Sequence record: PP456877.1
DNA length: 64,000 nt
Direction: 5' to 3' (one strand)
Part shown: in pieces, positions 13,673 to 43,603 of the stretch
Position numbering within the stretch: position 1 is the stretch's first letter
How the letters are laid out: each line of letters starts with the position of its first letter
Position numbers and translations under genes: made by a program
Notes under the pieces: model-generated
Seen by the model: the letters and a program-made list of their open reading frames with translations, nothing else
What the model was told of the DNA's origin: nothing
Database searches by the model: none

Positions 13673-16123
13673 TTACTTAATGGCACGATTCACAGCAGTG
13701 TTAATTGCATTGGTAAGAGCTACAATGTAATCAACTAGAACGGTGTGGTTTTCAGCCGATTGGCCAACAACTTCCCATACTGCACTAGCTAGTTGCCGGA
13801 CTTTCTTTTTACCGGCTTTACTATCCATGCTAGCCACTTTAGAGATATCACGGTTAGCTTGGTCAAGACGACGTACACCGCGGTTACCGCTAACTTTTAG
13901 AGAGGCATTACCAAGACCAATTAGAACTTTAGAAAGTTTCATTAGTTCAGTAACGTCCTTACGGCTAACTTTAGCAGTAGCAGTACCGGTAGCACCCCAT
14001 TCACCAGTTGGAAGTGCAATAGCAGCTAATCGTTCAATATCTTTACTAGTGCGACCAGTTACATCACGGCCAGACTTCTCGAAGGTAAAACTACCTTCTA
14101 GTTTTCCACTGATAAATGAACTCTCAGGATATTTCTTAACAGGTACTTCTAATTTAGTTGCTTCTTCTAGAGCCTTATCAATAGCTTCTTCACTATCAGC
14201 TTCAATAGCAGTTGCTAGATGACCAACTAAACGTTCGATGTATTCACCATCGATTTTAAAGCATTTGTTAATAATATCGCTAATACGACGAACCTCTCCA
14301 GCAACACCACGCACTAGATTATCATCACCTTTTAGAATACCATTAATTTTGATTTCTTTACTTTCAAAATTATCAGTGTCTTTAAGCTTAACTAGAAGTT
14401 GGTCAGCTTTAGTATTAGCTGCGGCGAGTTCTTTTTGGTTAGCTTTAACATGGATGGATGCATTTGCACCTTCAGCAATATTGTCGATAATATTTCGAAC
14501 AAACTTACCAATAGTGCTATTAAATGATTCTAGTGAAGTAACCATCGCCTTATAGTAATCTTCTAGATTACCATAACCATAATCTTCCATTGCTGGAATA
14601 CCAGGTGAATAGACATCAAAGGCATTGTGTAGACGTTCTAAGCAGCTATTAGCATGAACGATGAACTGAGGGCTATACTGCTTATGTTCTAGTCCATAAT
14701 GCAGAATCTCAAGCATTGATTCATTTGATGCCTGCTCTTCAAGTAATTGACCAATGGTCTTCTTACTGTCCTCAACTTCATCTTCAAGATCATCAGCTTC
14801 AGCAACTGCCTCATCAGCAGCTTCATCTGCTTCTTCAACATCATCTTCAGTTACTTCTACATCGACATCTGGAATATCAATTTCACCTTCAGCTAGTTTC
14901 TCTTCGATGTCATCTTCAGAGACATCATCATCAGCTTCAGCGACAATTGTTTCACTATCATCTTCAACTGCACCTTCTTCAATTGTTGGTTCAGCAATAG
15001 TAGATGCTGTTTCAGTTTCAGCAACTGTTTCTTCAGTTTCAGCTTCATTAATTAATACATCAGTAGAATCACTGTCATCATTAGTTAATTCTTCTTCAGC
15101 TTCATCCCGAACTTCTTCCAATTCGCTTAAGCCGTCTTCAGCTACTTCTGCTGTTTCGGCAGCTTCTTCTACAATTGGATCAGTTACAGCTACTTCTTCA
15201 TCAACTGCTACGATTTCATCCGGTTCAGCTTCAGCAGGGATACTTTCAGATTCCGTCTCTACTACTTCAGCTACTTCACTATCAGTTGTATCCGGCGTGT
15301 CTTCCACGGTTTCAACAACTTCTGTTTCAGCATCAGCTACAGCTGGTTCAGTAACATCGACTTCTTCAGTTTCAGTAATCTCTGCATCAGGTTCATCATT
15401 GGAACTTTCATCAGCAGTTGTCTGTTCAGCACCGGCTTCTTCCGGTGTTACATCATCATCGATACCAGGAACTGCTTCGCTTACAACTTCACCAGCATCT
15501 AATACTTCATCCGGTAGTGTATCCATAGTGGATGACACGGGTTCATCACCAGCTGGAAGTTCTTCAGACAGTGGTGCAGGAGGCGGAGTTTCGTCACCAA
15601 GTGGGGTTTCTTCAGTGGGAGTTAATTCCACTGCTGTTTCACCAGGTGCTTCTGCAACAGGCACTAGTTCAGTATCATCAGCCGCATCTTGTGCAGCTTC
15701 AATAATTTCAGTGGTTGAATCTAAAACCTCTTTACCGCCTTCAGAAATTGTACCGATTTCTTCAGCGATTTCAGCTTCAGCAACTTTAACTGCTTCTTCG
15801 CCTTCTTCGACACTAGTGGTAGCTAGCGGTTCAGGAATACTTTCCTCAACAACAGTTTCTTCTGGTACAACTTCTTCAACAATTACTGCTGACTTATCAG
15901 CAGCATGTGCTGTTTCTTCATGTTCTTCAGCAGAGATAATATCAGTATCTGTTTTAACAGTTTCATTCTCAATAGTTGCAGATGCATCATTATCTTTCTT
16001 TAAATCTTGAACTAGTTCATGATCATCTTTAACAGATGTCTCGACTTTGGATACATCCTGTTCCACAGCCGTACCATCTTGGTTCTCAAGGCTGGCTACA
16101 TATTTGTGAATATTTACCATCAT
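13673..16123 (-). CDS. gp97: Inner-body/internal head protein with very long acidic propeptide (gp97)
   Basis: About 500 E/D/A/V/T-rich residues, then SMLE, AMED and TSLES prohead-protease-type (S/A/G-x-E) sites. Confidence 0.8.
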   Translation of the reverse strand: MMVNIHKYVASLENQDGTAVEQDVSKVETSVKDDHELVQDLKKDNDASATIENETVKTDTDIISAEEHEETAHAADKSAVIVEEVVPEETVVEESIPEPLATTSVEEGEEAVKVAEAEIAEEIGTISEGGKEVLDSTTEIIEAAQDAADDTELVPVAEAPGETAVELTPTEETPLGDETPPPAPLSEELPAGDEPVSSTMDTLPDEVLDAGEVVSEAVPGIDDDVTPEEAGAEQTTADESSNDEPDAEITETEEVDVTEPAVADAETEVVETVEDTPDTTDSEVAEVVETESESIPAEAEPDEIVAVDEEVAVTDPIVEEAAETAEVAEDGLSELEEVRDEAEEELTNDDSDSTDVLINEAETEETVAETETASTIAEPTIEEGAVEDDSETIVAEADDDVSEDDIEEKLAEGEIDIPDVDVEVTEDDVEEADEAADEAVAEADDLEDEVEDSKKTIGQLLEEQASNESMLEILHYGLEHKQYSPQFIVHANSCLERLHNAFDVYSPGIPAMEDYGYGNLEDYYKAMVTSLESFNSTIGKFVRNIIDNIAEGANASIHVKANQKELAAANTKADQLLVKLKDTDNFESKEIKINGILKGDDNLVRGVAGEVRRISDIINKCFKIDGEYIERLVGHLATAIEADSEEAIDKALEEATKLEVPVKKYPESSFISGKLEGSFTFEKSGRDVTGRTSKDIERLAAIALPTGEWGATGTATAKVSRKDVTELMKLSKVLIGLGNASLKVSGNRGVRRLDQANRDISKVASMDSKAGKKKVRQLASAVWEVVGQSAENHTVLVDYIVALTNAINTAVNRAIK

Positions 16124-16222
16124 GTTAATATACCTTCTGTACAGAGTTTATGAGTTATGCTATTCGTCTTAGTCATAACTCCAAGCGACGAACGTTAACA
16201 TTCAAAATATTGCGCTGGAATC

Positions 16223-17338
16223 TTACTTTAGATTTTCATCGCATACATTGAGTATGGCAGTCAAATTACGACATGTTAATTTAAATAGGTCGTGATAAGG
16301 AATAGCCAACCAATCAACATATGTTTCTACCAATGAAACAAGTTCTTGTATTTCTCTATCAGGTCGCCCTTCATTACGAGCACGTGTTAGTTCATCTCTA
16401 AATCTGATTAATGCACCTTTAAGAGTCCTTAACCGTTCATTTCGACGAGTACGCATTGATGCAGCATTTGCACGATTGATCTTATCAACTACCTTAACAA
16501 CTCGATCAATAATACTTTCAGTAACTTGATGGTTGAAATGTTCAAATTCTATTTCGACTGGTAGTGGTCTAGGGGTTTCTTCAGATGGAACTAACCGTGA
16601 AGAAATATCCCTACACTGATCATAAGCACTTGCATTCTTATCGGGATTATAGTTAATTACAATTTGATGATTACCTAGCAAATGCAATGATACAAATCGA
16701 TTACCTTGATCGCGATAAACAGATGGTGTGGTTATTTTAGTTGGGGCACTATTTAATAGTAGTTCTGCTAAAGCATCTGGACTAGCATTTGGATTCATAT
16801 ACGAAGGTATGATATTAGCTGGCCTTAGAATCACATTGTCTAATCCATTGATATACCCATCAACTACTGTCTCCAATACGCGTAAGTGAGATAATAAATT
16901 AGCACTATTGGTAATAGGTTTATATCTAACACTTAAGTTCTGAATACGAGTTGTAATTAGGAATGTAGGATTCTTATTTTTACGAGTTCTAGCACGACTG
17001 TTAACTCGTAAGTTTTCTGCTCGAATTGCAACATATTCAGCAGTAGCTGCTAGCACTACTCCACTATCCATCAGTTTCTCAATAGTGGTAACAAATAGTT
17101 TTATAACTCGATCAATAACATGTTTAATAGTATCACTAATATCTTCAGTAGATACAACATCCTCTAATTCTTTGATAACCCCTTGGATCTGATTATAATC
17201 TTCCATACCGCCTAATAGATCCATCACTCGCCTAGCTAACGCTTCATCGCCTGATAATAAATCTGCAAGTCTTTTAGGTTCATCAAGATCAATAATCATT
17301 TCATCTGGAGTATCTTTATAAATATCAATTAATTCCAT
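16223..17338 (-). CDS. gp96: Internal head protein (gp96)
   Basis: Acidic N-terminus ending in VSTED; member of the paralogue array. Confidence 0.75.
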   Translation of the reverse strand: MELIDIYKDTPDEMIIDLDEPKRLADLLSGDEALARRVMDLLGGMEDYNQIQGVIKELEDVVSTEDISDTIKHVIDRVIKLFVTTIEKLMDSGVVLAATAEYVAIRAENLRVNSRARTRKNKNPTFLITTRIQNLSVRYKPITNSANLLSHLRVLETVVDGYINGLDNVILRPANIIPSYMNPNASPDALAELLLNSAPTKITTPSVYRDQGNRFVSLHLLGNHQIVINYNPDKNASAYDQCRDISSRLVPSEETPRPLPVEIEFEHFNHQVTESIIDRVVKVVDKINRANAASMRTRRNERLRTLKGALIRFRDELTRARNEGRPDREIQELVSLVETYVDWLAIPYHDLFKLTCRNLTAILNVCDENLK

Positions 17339-38630: not shown

Positions 38631-39989
38631 TTAACTGATGCGATCGCGATAAGACCATTTAACAGTCTTAAGAACAGCACTGTGCATTTTAGACATGAAG
38701 ATGGATAGGAATCGACCACCAACACCTGCTGCCGCTGCCGGTATGCCATTAGGGTTCTCTGACATTTGTTTACCCATACAGACAGCGCATACGTTCTTAC
38801 CTCTACCTATTACACCATTAGCTGGATCACCACCAGCCTTACATGTCATTGGACCACGTAGTTCAATCTCAGTGCCAACTAGTTCATCAATATTAGTTTC
38901 TTCAATAAGGATAGATTTCCCATTCTTAACATAAGACAAGCCAATGAAATCTTTCTTATTAAATTGATGAACAGTGGTTGGAATACCTATCCATGTATTG
39001 CAGTCTTCCATAATAATCCTGACTGTACCAACCATTCGATAAATCGTTTTAGTTGACTCACCGCCAAGGGCTGTTTGTGCACCACGGTTATATGAGCCAT
39101 AACGTAATGAGTTATTCATTACTGGCATATGGTCAGTGTCAATGCCTTCTTCCAATGATTTACCGATATATTCAACTGATGTACCATCTTGGAATGGTGC
39201 TTCCCCACCAAACATACCAAATACTTTCTTACGCACGCCACCAAATAATTTACTATGTTTAGTGTCATAGAACTCATAAGAAGGATCGTCTTTTAGATAG
39301 TCCTCATCTAGCTTGATTAATGCATTACCCATTTCTGCAATAACAGCCGGATCATCTAACCGATCTTTATATTTCTCTTCTAGTTCTTTACGTAACTTAT
39401 CTCTGTCTGGTGCGGAGGTCATTGATTTCTCAGTAATGGATGTTACCAAGGTACTAGCATATGCTGGCAATGCTAAACAATGATCTGCAAACATCCGATA
39501 TTGCCATACATATAACTTACCATCAGTTGCACGCGGTGGATTATCATCATCAATTGGATCATCGATCATGCGGTTAAGAATTTCTTTCTCAACTTTACCA
39601 ATATCGAAATAACCAGATTGGAATGGGAACAGATCACCAAAAGGTAAACATAATACTAAATGGTTAACAAAAACGTTACCATAAGTTGTTCTTAATGCAC
39701 CTGGTCCTTTATAGTTTTCAATTTCACCAGGTTGTAAAATGAATTCATCTCGAAATGCTAATGGTTGTTTACCTTCAATATAATCGTCGATATAAACAAC
39801 TTCATCATTAGAATCGCCTTCTTTATAGAAGAACATTTTACCATCTTTGAAATATGGCTTGTATAGATATTCACCACCATCATTTGGGTTATAAACGATA
39901 TTAAATAAAACGTTAACCCATGCTCGTTTCTTATCTAATCCAGCATTGATACCCATTAGAAAATAATCACGTAATTTCATTAGTATCAC
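38631..39989 (-). CDS. gp80: Virion RNA polymerase beta-prime-like subunit (gp80; alternative start 39980)
   Basis: Bridge helix RGAQTALGGESTK..MEDCNT, Zn site LRGPMTC..CAVCMG, trigger loop GGRFLSIFMSKMH. Confidence 0.9.
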   Translation of the reverse strand: MILMKLRDYFLMGINAGLDKKRAWVNVLFNIVYNPNDGGEYLYKPYFKDGKMFFYKEGDSNDEVVYIDDYIEGKQPLAFRDEFILQPGEIENYKGPGALRTTYGNVFVNHLVLCLPFGDLFPFQSGYFDIGKVEKEILNRMIDDPIDDDNPPRATDGKLYVWQYRMFADHCLALPAYASTLVTSITEKSMTSAPDRDKLRKELEEKYKDRLDDPAVIAEMGNALIKLDEDYLKDDPSYEFYDTKHSKLFGGVRKKVFGMFGGEAPFQDGTSVEYIGKSLEEGIDTDHMPVMNNSLRYGSYNRGAQTALGGESTKTIYRMVGTVRIIMEDCNTWIGIPTTVHQFNKKDFIGLSYVKNGKSILIEETNIDELVGTEIELRGPMTCKAGGDPANGVIGRGKNVCAVCMGKQMSENPNGIPAAAAGVGGRFLSIFMSKMHSAVLKTVKWSYRDRIS

Positions 39990-40824
39990 CTATGCTATTT
40001 AAAATCTTTTTAGCTTCATTTTCCATAATAGATCGTTCAATATTGTTAGATGTGAAATCATCTATAATACCCATTACCGTTCTACTAATTTCATTCTGTT
40101 CAGTATTTGAAATTAATACCAATCCGACAATTTCTTTAGCAACTTCAATAGGCGTCATAGCATCTAATGGGCCAAATGAAATTTGTAATAGGGCATCAAT
40201 ATTCCTTTTACCAACACGTAATCCTGCATTAACTAGTTCCATAGCTAACTTAAATGATGCGCGCGTATGAATACGAATAAGGCGATTAATTAAATTAATC
40301 CGTTCGACATTACTTACATTTCCATATGCTTGACCACGGGTAGTAAGTACTGACTGAATAAATGATGTAATATTACTAATAAGTGTTGGTGATACACTTT
40401 CAATTAAGTCAATGATATTTAAGAAATCTACACTTGTATCGATAAGTTCTACTAGATGTGCTAATGTCTCTTCGGGTGAATATTCAGCTAACAGGATATC
40501 ATTCACTTCATCTGGAATAATGTAATCTTCTAAACTAAGGAGTGTATTAACAACAGCTTGCCGTTCGGCCTGAGTTGCTTCATCACTAATTTTAATAAGA
40601 TGTTCATTTAGAATTTCATCTTGTGCAATGCGAATGATATCATCAATGCGAGAAAGAAGCATTGCATTATCTGAGATACCTGATTGAATCTGACATACTG
40701 TATTTAGTTCATCTAGAGCTGCAACATAATTGATCTTTTCAAAAGATGCTACACAGTCTAGGATAACTTCTTTACGCTCTTCATGTATAAGAGGCGTAAG
40801 ATAACTATCAATGAAATCTTTCAT
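39967..40824 (-). CDS. Conserved protein (gp79 position)
   Basis: Start reassigned to MKDFID (AAGGA RBS). Confidence 0.7.
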   Translation of the reverse strand: MKDFIDSYLTPLIHEERKEVILDCVASFEKINYVAALDELNTVCQIQSGISDNAMLLSRIDDIIRIAQDEILNEHLIKISDEATQAERQAVVNTLLSLEDYIIPDEVNDILLAEYSPEETLAHLVELIDTSVDFLNIIDLIESVSPTLISNITSFIQSVLTTRGQAYGNVSNVERINLINRLIRIHTRASFKLAMELVNAGLRVGKRNIDALLQISFGPLDAMTPIEVAKEIVGLVLISNTEQNEISRTVMGIIDDFTSNNIERSIMENEAKKILNSIGDTNEIT

Positions 40825-40995
40825 GACGATATCCTTTTTATACGGAATTATTAACATAGGGTTGGACAGATAGTTATTCTTTAATATAGTGTAAAATTAC
40901 CAAATGTGTTAAATATATGTTGAACTAATCATTTTTTTCATTTGTCAATTTATATTGGCAAATATTAAATTAAGCCTCTATCGGAGTATAACAAG

Positions 40996-41490
40996 ATGTC
41001 AAATAAAGCTAAAGAACCAACTCTAACTAAAGAACAGGAAAAGACTCTACGTCTATTTGAACGTGCAGTTGGAGCATCAGCTGCGGCAGCTGATCATATT
41101 CTTAACCGTGATGGTTGGGATGTTGTCAATGTACTAGCAGGTTCTGTAGGTAAGCGTATTCTACAAACTGAAGTATTCATTAATCCAGTTATCAATAAGA
41201 TCAATGAAATCATTCCGACATTATCTGATCCTACTGGATTCCAAAAGAACCTACAAACAGTTATTGCTGACCTTAATCGACTAACTAAAATTATCAGTGT
41301 CCTATATGCACAACATCAAGGTAAGGCTGGTCCAGCAAATAATGAAGATGAACTAAAACTCATCAGTGAACTTGTTACTAAATACACTGGTATTGAAGGT
41401 GCTATTGAACGCGGTATTGATGGTGTAATCCTAGCGATGATCGGCACTCTTCGAGAAGCTGGTTGGGACGAAAAACTAATTCAACAATAA
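40996..41490 (+). CDS. Conserved helical protein (gp78 position)
   Basis: GGAG RBS, first gene of the plus-strand operon. Confidence 0.75.
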   Translation: MSNKAKEPTLTKEQEKTLRLFERAVGASAAAADHILNRDGWDVVNVLAGSVGKRILQTEVFINPVINKINEIIPTLSDPTGFQKNLQTVIADLNRLTKIISVLYAQHQGKAGPANNEDELKLISELVTKYTGIEGAIERGIDGVILAMIGTLREAGWDEKLIQQ

Positions 41491-41501: not shown

Positions 41502-43103
41502 ATGGCTACTGCTGACTTCGATAATGAGTACGATGATACTCCAGAAGAGAATTTACTAGATCAAATTGATGAGATCAATGCGCAACACGATCCTGACTCT
41601 AGTATTGAAAATAATGACGAGGTGGAAACTCCACCTTTCGTTTCTGATCAAAAAGAAATTAAACTACGTATTCCACGTAATGCTAAAACTGGAAATATCC
41701 GGGATGCTTCTGAACCGGCTATTAAAGATAGTGCTAGCATTCTTACTTTGCTACGTGAGAACCCCCAGACTGTTTATAATTTCCTGGATCACAATAAAGA
41801 ACTATTTAAAGCATTTGCTGATAATAAAATAGATGACACTAGTGACGGTGTAAAGTGGACAGCTGCTATTCTGGAAGGCTTAGCTCACTCTATTGTTGAA
41901 GATGCACCAATCGGTGCAACTGCCCGAGAAGGTTCTGAATGGTCTAGTGAAATTCCTTATGGTGAAAAGATCATTCGCCCAGGCCGACCTGTATTTAATA
42001 CCAATGGTCGTAAAATGACCGATGATGAAACTCTAGTTTTCCTAACACGTAAAGCTAACATCGGTACGCCATATGATACTTTCCTACCTCATTCAGGTAT
42101 TTGGGTAAAACTACGTGCACCTACTGGTACTGAAGTAGCTGCCCTACAAGCACGTCTAGCACAATTAAAGATCCGACTAGGTGCTGAATCAAAAGGTATG
42201 CTGTTCTCAAACATGGCAGCTGTATTACTTAACATGGTTAGTAGTTTAGCACTTGCATGTGTTATTCAATCCAACTATAAGTTCAACACTCCAACTGACC
42301 TAGAGCATGTTATCTCAGTAGCTGATGAACCATTCTTACATCATGCACTAGCAGCGACTATGTATCCAGATGGATTTAATTATAGTTATCCATGTATTGC
42401 AGATGCCAATACATGTAACCATATTGAAACAGCGAAACTTAATATGTCAACGCTTGTTCAATATGATCTACTGGCATTCTCAGAAGAACAAAAGAAATAT
42501 ATTGCACGTAAGTTTAATGCATGTACTGAATCTGATCTTAAGACTTATAAAGAAGGATTCCGTATTGAAACTCAAGTAACTGAAATGTTTGGTGACGTTG
42601 GTGTTGTTCTTGAGATGTGCACAATTGCTGACCGCCGAGAGTCTGGTGATAGTTGGATTAACTCAATTATCGATATGACTCAAGGTAGTTTTAATGAACC
42701 AGTTGATGGACCGCAACGTTCTCAGTATATTGCACGTTTACAAAAGATCTCTATTGCCCGTCAGTTCTCACATTTTGTTAAAGAGATTAAAGTACGTGAA
42801 GATGATGATGGTGAAAGTTCTGAGGATAATATCCGCACTGCAACTACTAACCGTGAAACTATTGAAAAGTTCTTAACTAATATTCTATCCACACCGGAAT
42901 ATAATGATCGCTTTATTAATGCGGTAAGTAACTTCATTGATTCACAACTAATTGGTATGATTGCAATTACAAGTTGGAATTGCCCAGTATGTGAGTCACC
43001 TGCCGCTACTAAATTTAAAGAACGTTTCCCACACCTAATCCCTATTGACATGCTGTCAACTTTTTTTACTTTGGCGGCCTCGAAGTCAAACCGGATGGTG
43101 TAG
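41502..43103 (+). CDS. Putative tail/baseplate-hub assembly chaperone, T4 gp26-like (gp77 position)
   Basis: WVKLRAP..E, ADEPFL..YPC..C..NM and terminal CPVC resemble the gp26/TAC pattern (by eye). Confidence 0.6.
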   Translation: MATADFDNEYDDTPEENLLDQIDEINAQHDPDSSIENNDEVETPPFVSDQKEIKLRIPRNAKTGNIRDASEPAIKDSASILTLLRENPQTVYNFLDHNKELFKAFADNKIDDTSDGVKWTAAILEGLAHSIVEDAPIGATAREGSEWSSEIPYGEKIIRPGRPVFNTNGRKMTDDETLVFLTRKANIGTPYDTFLPHSGIWVKLRAPTGTEVAALQARLAQLKIRLGAESKGMLFSNMAAVLLNMVSSLALACVIQSNYKFNTPTDLEHVISVADEPFLHHALAATMYPDGFNYSYPCIADANTCNHIETAKLNMSTLVQYDLLAFSEEQKKYIARKFNACTESDLKTYKEGFRIETQVTEMFGDVGVVLEMCTIADRRESGDSWINSIIDMTQGSFNEPVDGPQRSQYIARLQKISIARQFSHFVKEIKVREDDDGESSEDNIRTATTNRETIEKFLTNILSTPEYNDRFINAVSNFIDSQLIGMIAITSWNCPVCESPAATKFKERFPHLIPIDMLSTFFTLAASKSNRMV

Positions 43104-43564
43104 TTAATGATCTGAGATATAGTCGTCTTGAGGCCACTTTCAAGGAAGATAGTGGCCACATCCTACATCCAAACTTTGGTTATGATAAGTTAACTGAAGA
43201 TGATACACACTTAGATAGACTATTATCGACAGTAGGGGCAGTAAGACCGTCTACAGCAGCACGTTTAACAAGAGAAGCATATCTACTTGATTATGATATC
43301 GGTTCACCAGAAAACGGACCCATGTGGTTAAATAAGGTGAATCCTAAAGAGGATTTTATCGAAGGTGGGTTGAGAAGGAGACTGACTAGAGATTTCTTCA
43401 AGTATAAAGTAGGTAGCTTATCTAATATGTCATTAACTGAATTCTTTGAATTAGCTTATTCTGAGGTAGAATACATAATTGAATTATGTAGAAATATTAC
43501 CCATAATGAAGCTGTTAATAACAATAATCAGTTAAATGAATTAAACAAGCCGTTAACTAAATAA
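43067..43564 (+). CDS. -1 frame extension of gp77 (GT-like C-terminal domain)
   Basis: Frame is open 43049-43561 with no ATG, GTG or TTG until 43322. It is entered by T TTT TTT at 43061-43067. Confidence 0.7.
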   Translation, partial: YFGGLEVKPDGVVNDLRYSRLEATFKEDSGHILHPNFGYDKLTEDDTHLDRLLSTVGAVRPSTAARLTREAYLLDYDIGSPENGPMWLNKVNPKEDFIEGGLRRRLTRDFFKYKVGSLSNMSLTEFFELAYSEVEYIIELCRNITHNEAVNNNNQLNELNKPLTK

Positions 43565-43580
43565 AAAAAAATAAAGACAG

Positions 43581-43603
43581 CCCCCTCTCCATGTGGAGAG
43601 GGG
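43581..43603. terminator. Bidirectional terminator
   Basis: CCCCTCTCC-atgt-GGAGAGGGG between convergent units. Confidence 0.8.

Follow-up and report, generated by a model that had tools for sequence, protein, structure and literature searches.

In the lambda G/GT and P2 E/E+E' systems, two proteins are made from one mRNA: they share an N-terminal body, and the longer of them arises when ribosomes slip into the -1 frame shortly before the first open reading frame (ORF) ends. The frameshift is kept across very divergent relatives although the sequences are not, and the short and long forms presumably have to be made in a set proportion. In P2, too, the slip takes place on a run of U. E. coli dnaX (tau and gamma) and the transposases of insertion sequence elements likewise express a single gene as two products, through a bacterial-type -1 slip on a homopolymeric X_XXY_YYZ heptamer. 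The dnaX heptamer is A_AAA_AAG, flanked by a Shine-Dalgarno-like element upstream and a hairpin downstream, and its shifted product is the shorter one. Here, we analysed a 64,000-nucleotide (nt) stretch of sequence record PP456877.1 (hereafter the window) and focused on gp77, one of about 70 core genes of the nucleus-forming giant phages, to which no function has been assigned. We propose that gp77 most probably encodes two proteins, translated from one mRNA by programmed -1 ribosomal frameshifting. In this layout it resembles the lambda and P2 pairs as well as the bacterial-type sites, and it differs from dnaX in that we found no conserved stimulator and that frameshifting lengthens the product. 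The recoding event is real, family-wide and apparently undescribed, its mechanism being of a known kind; no published description of it was found in the literature on phiKZ, jumbo-phage or SPN3US frameshifting. The name 'gp77' in several publications refers to a different protein of another phage.

Frame arrangement and conservation of gp77

The zero-frame ORF of gp77 (ORF0) overlaps at its 3'-end an ORF in the -1 frame that runs on past its stop codon (Table 1). The initial annotation had described a predicted 80-amino-acid (aa) ORF at this place as the tail of a 171-codon open frame with a start-less first part, and its coordinates hold: the first ATG, GTG or TTG of the -1 frame is the ATG at 43322, and the 91 codons before it contain none. 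The U_UUU_UUU heptamer was likewise located where it had been placed (43061-43067), inside the overlap, in the X_XXY_YYZ phase of ORF0 and with the second frame in the -1 relation. By count, a ribosome changing frame here would join 522 zero-frame codons to 165 codons of the -1 frame, which gives the 687 residues that had been predicted for the long isoform. As a control, we examined all 43 ORFs of at least 150 aa in the window (86 alternative-frame tests), and gp77 alone combined an in-phase heptamer with a long alternative-frame ORF that runs beyond the stop and lacks start codons over a long distance. The remaining long alternative-frame ORFs have a start codon at most 9 codons from the opening of the frame, which marks them as ordinary neighbouring genes. 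The frame arrangement in gp77 is more than chance within the window. Moreover, the stretch from the ORF0 stop to the last codon of the extension holds no terminator-like site, and both frames should thus lie on one transcript.

Table 1. Features of the gp77 locus, in positions of the window
Feature	Position	Strand	Remarks
Recoded gene gp77 (ORF0 plus -1-frame extension)	41502..43564	+	arrangement in 40/40 distinct relatives
ORF0, PHIKZ077 (gp77)	41502..43103	+	533 aa, short isoform; core gene cg18 of Chimalliviridae
-1-frame ORF	43049..43564	+	171 codons plus stop; 165-residue extension domain; phrog_12109 / 7580 / 13274 group
Overlap of both frames	43049..43103	+	55 nt; holds the in-phase U7 slippery heptamer
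80-aa ORF of gene callers (PHIKZ076.4 in phiKZ)	43322..43564	+	C-terminal half of the extension
Terminator-like hairpin	43582..43603		9 pairs, 7 of them G-C; scored on both strands; 3' of the extension stop
gp78 homologue	40996..41490	+	164 aa, phrog_14050, function unknown; directly upstream, co-oriented; context, not a recoding signal

We then compared the locus with its relatives, using a set of 40 distinct loci from Pseudomonas, Escherichia, Erwinia, Salmonella and Bacillus phages and from IMG/VR contigs. All 40 keep an in-phase N_UUU_UUN site and a -1 ORF with an extension of 151-179 codons, and homology to the extension is confined to the -1 frame in every one of them; the slippery site and the overlapping start-less ORF, whose conservation had been suggested as a check, were thus present in each homologue examined. 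The ORF0 product spans 489-656 aa across the family. When the -1-frame product was used as a tblastn query, matches of 34-40% identity were obtained in PhiPA3, PA1C, HPP-Temi, 201phi2-1, Viktualia, Psa21, D6, Phabio and Noxifer, beginning no more than 6 residues from the first residue of the query and straddling two annotated genes. In these Pseudomonas phages, the ORF0 homologue stops a few dozen bases 3' of the U-run, and a -1 ORF spanning that stop adds an extension of 161-173 codons, while the +1 frame is closed after 6-59 codons. The same arrangement was found in Goslar (E. coli), RAY (Erwinia), SPN3US (Salmonella) and the 200-kb Bacillus phage AgentSmith, where the identity of ORF0 to gp77 has fallen to 21-27%. 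Roughly 180 further phage records also match gp77.

A scan of IMG/VR with the gp77 alignment returned 35 loci, 34 of which could be evaluated. Each of these 34 carries an in-phase U-run with a -1 ORF of 162-225 codons, and the extension profile matches the -1 frame in each (E 1e-69 to 3e-6) and the +1 frame in none. Word-index homologue searches gave few proteins (19 for gp77, and one and then five for the extension); gene callers truncate the extension. In Pseudomonas phage RVTF4 (PQ015378.1), the U-run and the first 58 codons of the extension are kept and are followed by one additional frame change; the remainder of the extension domain lies in another frame and is annotated as a separate coding sequence of 106 aa. 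The extra frame change in RVTF4 may be an assembly error or a real decay of the long isoform.

The composition of the site was tabulated over the 40 loci. The heptamer is U_UUU_UUU in 16, U_UUU_UUC in 8, G_UUU_UUU in 7, A_UUU_UUU in 3, G_UUU_UUC in 3, A_UUU_UUC in 2 and U_UUU_UUA in one, so that 25 loci have the canonical U_UUU_UUN and 15 have N_UUU_UUN with G or A in the first position. The U-run is 5-8 long, with 7-8 T in 21 loci and 5-6 T in 19. The first of the two Phe codons is UUU in 40/40 loci as compared with 35% UUU among the Phe codons elsewhere in the same genes, a contrast to which no formal probability is attached, the 40 lineages being related. Such constancy of UUU across this divergence points to selection on the nucleotides themselves, beyond the retention of Phe-Phe.

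Coding of both frames and alternative explanations

The coding character of the extension was assessed on an alignment of 14 extension sequences, which are homologous over their full length and share conserved blocks; all extension pieces fall in one PHROG group (phrog_12109, 7580, 13274). Substitutions in the -1 frame between close pairs are concentrated at codon position 3, with 20/8/61 changes at the three positions between 201phi2-1 and Viktualia and 22/7/61 between PA1C and HPP-Temi. A profile was built from these 14 of the 40 loci, the other 26 being independent, and in 39/40 loci homology to it is already present before the first codon that could serve as a start. That first start of the -1 frame lies at codon 34 in the median (range 8-136 over the 40 loci), and its position is not conserved.

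The overlap itself also bears the mark of two readings, its nucleotide sequence being unusually conserved from the U-run onward. In 11 Pseudomonas-phage lineages, the third-position identity of ORF0 was 0.38 over the 54 nt that precede the U-run; between the run and +27 it was 0.72, a rise typical of nucleotides that serve two reading frames. The zero-frame tail 3' of the site varies in length from 9 to 22 residues after Phe-Phe, depending on the phage, and is conserved in character: it reads FFTLA... in the Pseudomonas phages, and Goslar, RAY, SPN3US and AgentSmith have tails related to this one. In an AlphaFold2 (AF2) model of gp77 the tail belongs to the last helix, residues 517-532. A conserved tail that is helical in the model suggests that the short form is a product in its own right. 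Taken together, these sequence comparisons show that both frames are coding, that the site is under selection for slipperiness and that the arrangement is conserved throughout the family.

We also ran the extension profile in HMMER against the whole set of 1.84 billion representative proteins and obtained 719 relatives. Among the best 150 of them, no in-frame fusion of the extension to a long protein was found; all 150 are 45-186 aa long and most begin inside the domain. Short relatives that start inside a domain are the expected output of gene callers when the real N-terminus lies in another frame.

Given a homopolymer located exactly at the frame change, a frameshift mutation or a sequencing error in what would be one continuous gene of about 690 codons had to be considered. 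The window belongs to a phiKZ-like Pseudomonas phage, and the region shares 100% identity with Pseudomonas phage vB_Pae3705-KEN49 and 98-99.8% with 46 other phiKZ-like genomes; the 2063 nt of the gp77 region align whole, as a single ungapped piece, in these 47 independently sequenced genomes, and the extension product is at least 99% identical from its first codon in 47/47. A further 39 distinct lineages, from five host genera and from metagenomes, change frame at the same spot, the zero-frame tail beyond the site is itself conserved, and an in-frame fused version is absent among the best 150 extension relatives. With close genomes and distant lineages in agreement, the frame change in gp77, as judged from these alignments, is not a sequencing error, and this explanation is effectively refuted. 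A pair of separate genes, in which the downstream ORF would be initiated at the ATG at 43322, at a non-canonical start or by termination-reinitiation and the U-run would be incidental, is how every public record examined annotates the locus, and the best 150 of the 719 relatives have been called as short proteins in keeping with it. Yet homology and position-3-biased substitution reach far upstream of any start codon, the first start falls 8-136 codons into the conserved domain at no fixed place, the extension is always in the -1 frame and never in the +1 or 0 frame, and the first Phe codon is UUU in 40/40 loci against a background of 35%. We therefore reject an ordinary downstream gene and consider two separate genes very improbable.

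Transcriptional slippage is the main rival to ribosomal frameshifting: the phage RNA polymerase would add one U on the T-run in some transcripts, ribosomes would pass from ORF0 into the extension with no slip of their own, and the same two isoforms would result. The phiKZ-like phages transcribe with their own multisubunit RNA polymerases, for which we know of no characterisation of slippage behaviour, and the T-run is 7-8 long in 21 of the 40 loci. Known polymerase slippage sites usually need at least 8-9 identical bases, however, and in the other 19 loci the run has only 5-6 T; UUU_UUN is strictly kept in the phase of ORF0, with UUC and UUA variants that shorten the run yet retain tRNA re-pairing. 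Slippage by the polymerase is disfavoured because of these short runs and variants, and we regard it as unlikely. Several observations nevertheless weigh against programmed ribosomal frameshifting, and some of them speak for the polymerase. A conserved Phe-Phe also fixes the phase of the U-run, so that phase alone has no power against RNA-polymerase slippage, and the non-U first base in 15/40 heptamers implies imperfect re-pairing in the P site. No conserved downstream stem-loop or pseudoknot that could stimulate the ribosome was found, RNAalifold giving a helix of 4 pairs at -1.3 kcal/mol; the downstream fold is unremarkable in phiKZ (z = -0.65) and averages z = -0.45 over the 40 loci, with 6/40 below -2. 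Nor was a conserved Shine-Dalgarno-like element visible upstream of the site in the alignments of relatives. Stimulatory structures may be lineage-specific. That the ribosome rather than the RNA polymerase slips is what we infer from this balance, as we infer the ratio and the function of the isoforms.

Programmed -1 ribosomal frameshifting in gp77 would proceed as follows. Most ribosomes would end at the ORF0 stop and release the 533-residue form with its short conserved C-terminal helix, while some would slip back by one base with two tRNA-Phe on the UUU_UUN of N_UUU_UUN, or, in one lineage, with a pair of tRNA-Phe and tRNA-Leu. The simplest reading would be a tandem (or A-site) slippage of tRNA-Phe on UUU_UUN. 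After the slip, the -1 frame would supply a Gly/Pro-rich linker and then a helical domain of about 160 residues, yielding the 687-residue form. Two isoforms are predicted, and their ratio likely matters. The site is very deeply conserved, and it should be useful for the study of slippage on U-runs in which no RNA stimulator is obvious.

Protein relations, virion data and possible function

The initial annotation had gone further and taken gp77 and its extended form for a G/GT-style pair of tape-measure or hub chaperones. The recoding part of that proposal agrees with the data above, while size, position, Pfam and fold point away from the functional part. At 533 aa, gp77 is about four times as long as the first product of lambda-type systems (about 100-140 aa), and it does not lie between a tube gene and a tape-measure gene. 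A Pfam match of gp77 to tail assembly chaperones was not found, nor a PDB match, and the BFVD proteins labelled tail assembly chaperone gave Foldseek E values of only 0.66-1.8 (probability 0.08-0.33). The G and GT proteins are not known to remain in particles, whereas the gp77 homologue of Goslar was detected in purified virions. By size, position, Pfam or fold, gp77 is not a chaperone of the lambda G/GT type, and the analogy holds for the mode of expression.

The virion data come from CsCl-purified Goslar particles analysed by liquid chromatography and tandem mass spectrometry (MS), in which gp081, the gp77 homologue, was detected with 24 peptides and 49% coverage and estimated at about 22 copies per virion (range 15-35), and gp082, the annotated part of the -1 ORF, with one peptide and about 1/7 of the mass-normalised signal, in a search that covered annotated proteins only (Table S4, bioRxiv 10.64898/2026.04.21.720040). 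Host proteins and a few non-virion phage proteins are also in that sample, at lower levels (bioRxiv 10.64898/2026.04.21.720040). The gp082 peptide indicates that the -1 frame is expressed. As a further point against the frameshift, this single peptide fits a fused or an independent product alike, and a trans-frame protein is not among the published Goslar data. About 22 copies in the virion are a poor fit to a chaperone that leaves the particle. In the same data, gp079, gp081 and the neighbouring virion RNA polymerase subunit gp078 are at similar low copies (about 15-22). The record of 201phi2-1 carries no MS-identified flag for gp136, while the nearby gp138 is flagged. We found no mention of gp77 in the phiKZ structural atlas (PMC13250141) or of its homologue in the main text of the Goslar structure paper, and no functional or genetic data on gp77 in the phiKZ-like phage literature searched, which took in the core-genome paper, the Iyer/Aravind review, the SPN3US essential-gene paper and the PCH45 Tn-seq preprint.

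A second claim, of T4 gp26-like Cys motifs in gp77, was followed up by profile and structure comparison. Searches of Pfam, PHROG function labels and PDB sequences gave no informative match for gp77, the extension, gp78 or gp79. The AF2 model of gp77 reached a pLDDT of 77 and a pTM of 0.80, with residues 1-41 disordered. Foldseek found nothing for this model in the PDB (best E 3.4), and a solved structure of the T4 gp26/gp51 family did not turn up in that search either. In BFVD, after the giant-phage homologues, at least six entries named as T4-type baseplate or hub proteins were matched with E 8e-5 to 5e-3, a target TM-score of 0.51-0.56 and a root-mean-square deviation of 6.7-10.5; the names are 'Baseplate hub assembly protein, bacteriophage T4-like', 'Baseplate hub assembly chaperone', 'Putative baseplate hub subunit' and 'Baseplate protein'. 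The AgentSmith homologue of gp77 is already annotated as 'putative baseplate hub assembly protein'. Four Cys of gp77 (C298, C305, C494 and C497, as C-x6-C ... C-x2-C) are shared by 97% of 38 family members, and they probably form a metal site, predicted from the alignment, that joins the middle of the protein to its C-terminal end about 25 residues before the frameshift site. Four conserved Cys including CPxC occur in the T4 gp26/gp51 family as well.

Several results stand against a relation to the T4 proteins. T4 gp26 and gp51, taken from the T4 genome (NC_000866, accession from PMC5384007), both belong to PF12322 (T4_baseplate), with 216 and 178 bits, and with a cutoff of E 1 neither gp77 nor any of four distant homologues matched PF12322. 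An hhalign comparison of 38 gp77-family sequences with 11 gp51/gp26 sequences gave 33% probability over 23 columns around CPxC, which is suggestive at most, those with the single T4 gp26 and gp51 sequences gave 3-4%, and the order of the conserved Cys differs between the two families. The neighbours of gp77 are RNA polymerase subunit and helicase genes, which do not make a tail module. For the extension, the proposed likeness to a T domain or to T4 gp51 was not borne out: hhalign returned a probability of 0.1% against T4 gp26/gp51, and no Pfam match was found. The AF2 model of the extension, made from a 5-sequence alignment, is poor (pLDDT 52), with confident helices only in the last 60 or so residues. 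In T4, the corresponding proteins are also organised differently: they are less than half as long as gp77 and come from two separate paralogous genes with an internal in-frame start in gene 26 (product 26') and no frameshift; genes 26 and 51 lie beside genes 25, 27, 28 and 29, whereas gp77 is not beside annotated baseplate genes; and the extension resembles neither gp26 nor gp51. Through gene 26' and the paralogues, T4 also makes several related forms, by other means. The T4 genes 26 and 51 (15803-17229 of the T4 sequence) are neighbouring paralogues within PF12322, and their transcription is divergent.

Judged from the structural models, a kinship of gp77 with the T4 hub-assembly proteins gp26 and gp51 is a sensible lead. 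We tentatively consider, with more doubt than confidence, that the body common to both forms is distantly related in structure to T4 gp26/gp51 and that the two C-termini provide two modes of interaction, analogous and not homologous to those of G/GT and E/E+E'. A bolder proposal, which we hold to be rather unlikely, is that the short and long forms are a hub or tail-initiation assembly factor of all phiKZ-like giant phages, a frameshift-based single-gene counterpart of T4 26 plus 51. If it were true, the T4 hub-assembly proteins would be tied to the G/GT principle of one body, two C-termini and a fixed ratio, and core gene cg18 would gain a function. As a further twist of this proposal, one or both isoforms might stay in the particle (about 20 copies in Goslar), at a still unmodelled baseplate periphery or in the ejected protein set. 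The two C-termini, the putative four-Cys metal site and the possible link to T4 hub assembly are handles on the role of gp77.

Annotation of the locus and its surroundings

In the supplement of bioRxiv 10.1101/2023.02.24.529968, gp77 is listed as core gene cg18 of the Chimalliviridae, 'hypothetical protein'. The public records examined either lack the second half of the gene or shorten it to a small ORF, and give an 80-aa, a 45-aa or a 130-180-aa ORF, or nothing, for the extension region. The 80-aa ORF is an annotation artefact, since gene callers take the first ATG, and the variable calls over this region are probably artefacts of the missed frameshift in general. In vB_Pae3705-KEN49, the equivalent of window positions 43066-43564 or thereabouts is annotated with two opposite-strand ORFs (31 and 36 aa) and a 45-aa ORF, the former being spurious. 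Recognition of the recoding throughout the family would correct the annotation of hundreds of genomes and extend a core protein by a domain of 165 residues.

In the window and in all annotated relatives, gp77 is accompanied by gp78, gp79, RNA polymerase subunit genes and a RAD2/SF2 helicase gene. The order gp79 - gp78 - gp77 - extension (window 39967-41490 for the part upstream of gp77) is retained across the annotated relatives, PhiPA3, Goslar, RAY and SPN3US included, and apparently also in AgentSmith, where the gene two places upstream is annotated as 'putative virion structural protein'. Downstream, the hairpin at the end of the locus is a perfect, G+C-rich helix of 9 base pairs between the end of the extension and small ORFs annotated on the opposite strand; its position before these ORFs and its score on both strands make it a likely bidirectional terminator.

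Proteins with the extension domain have also been deposited under bacterial names. A 109-aa protein of the Goslar type is labelled Escherichia coli and occurs in 143 contigs, the longest of 243 kb, and a 96-aa protein about 90% identical to the phiKZ extension is labelled Klebsiella pneumoniae on a contig of 288 nt. These entries look like giant-phage genomes or reads inside bacterial assemblies.

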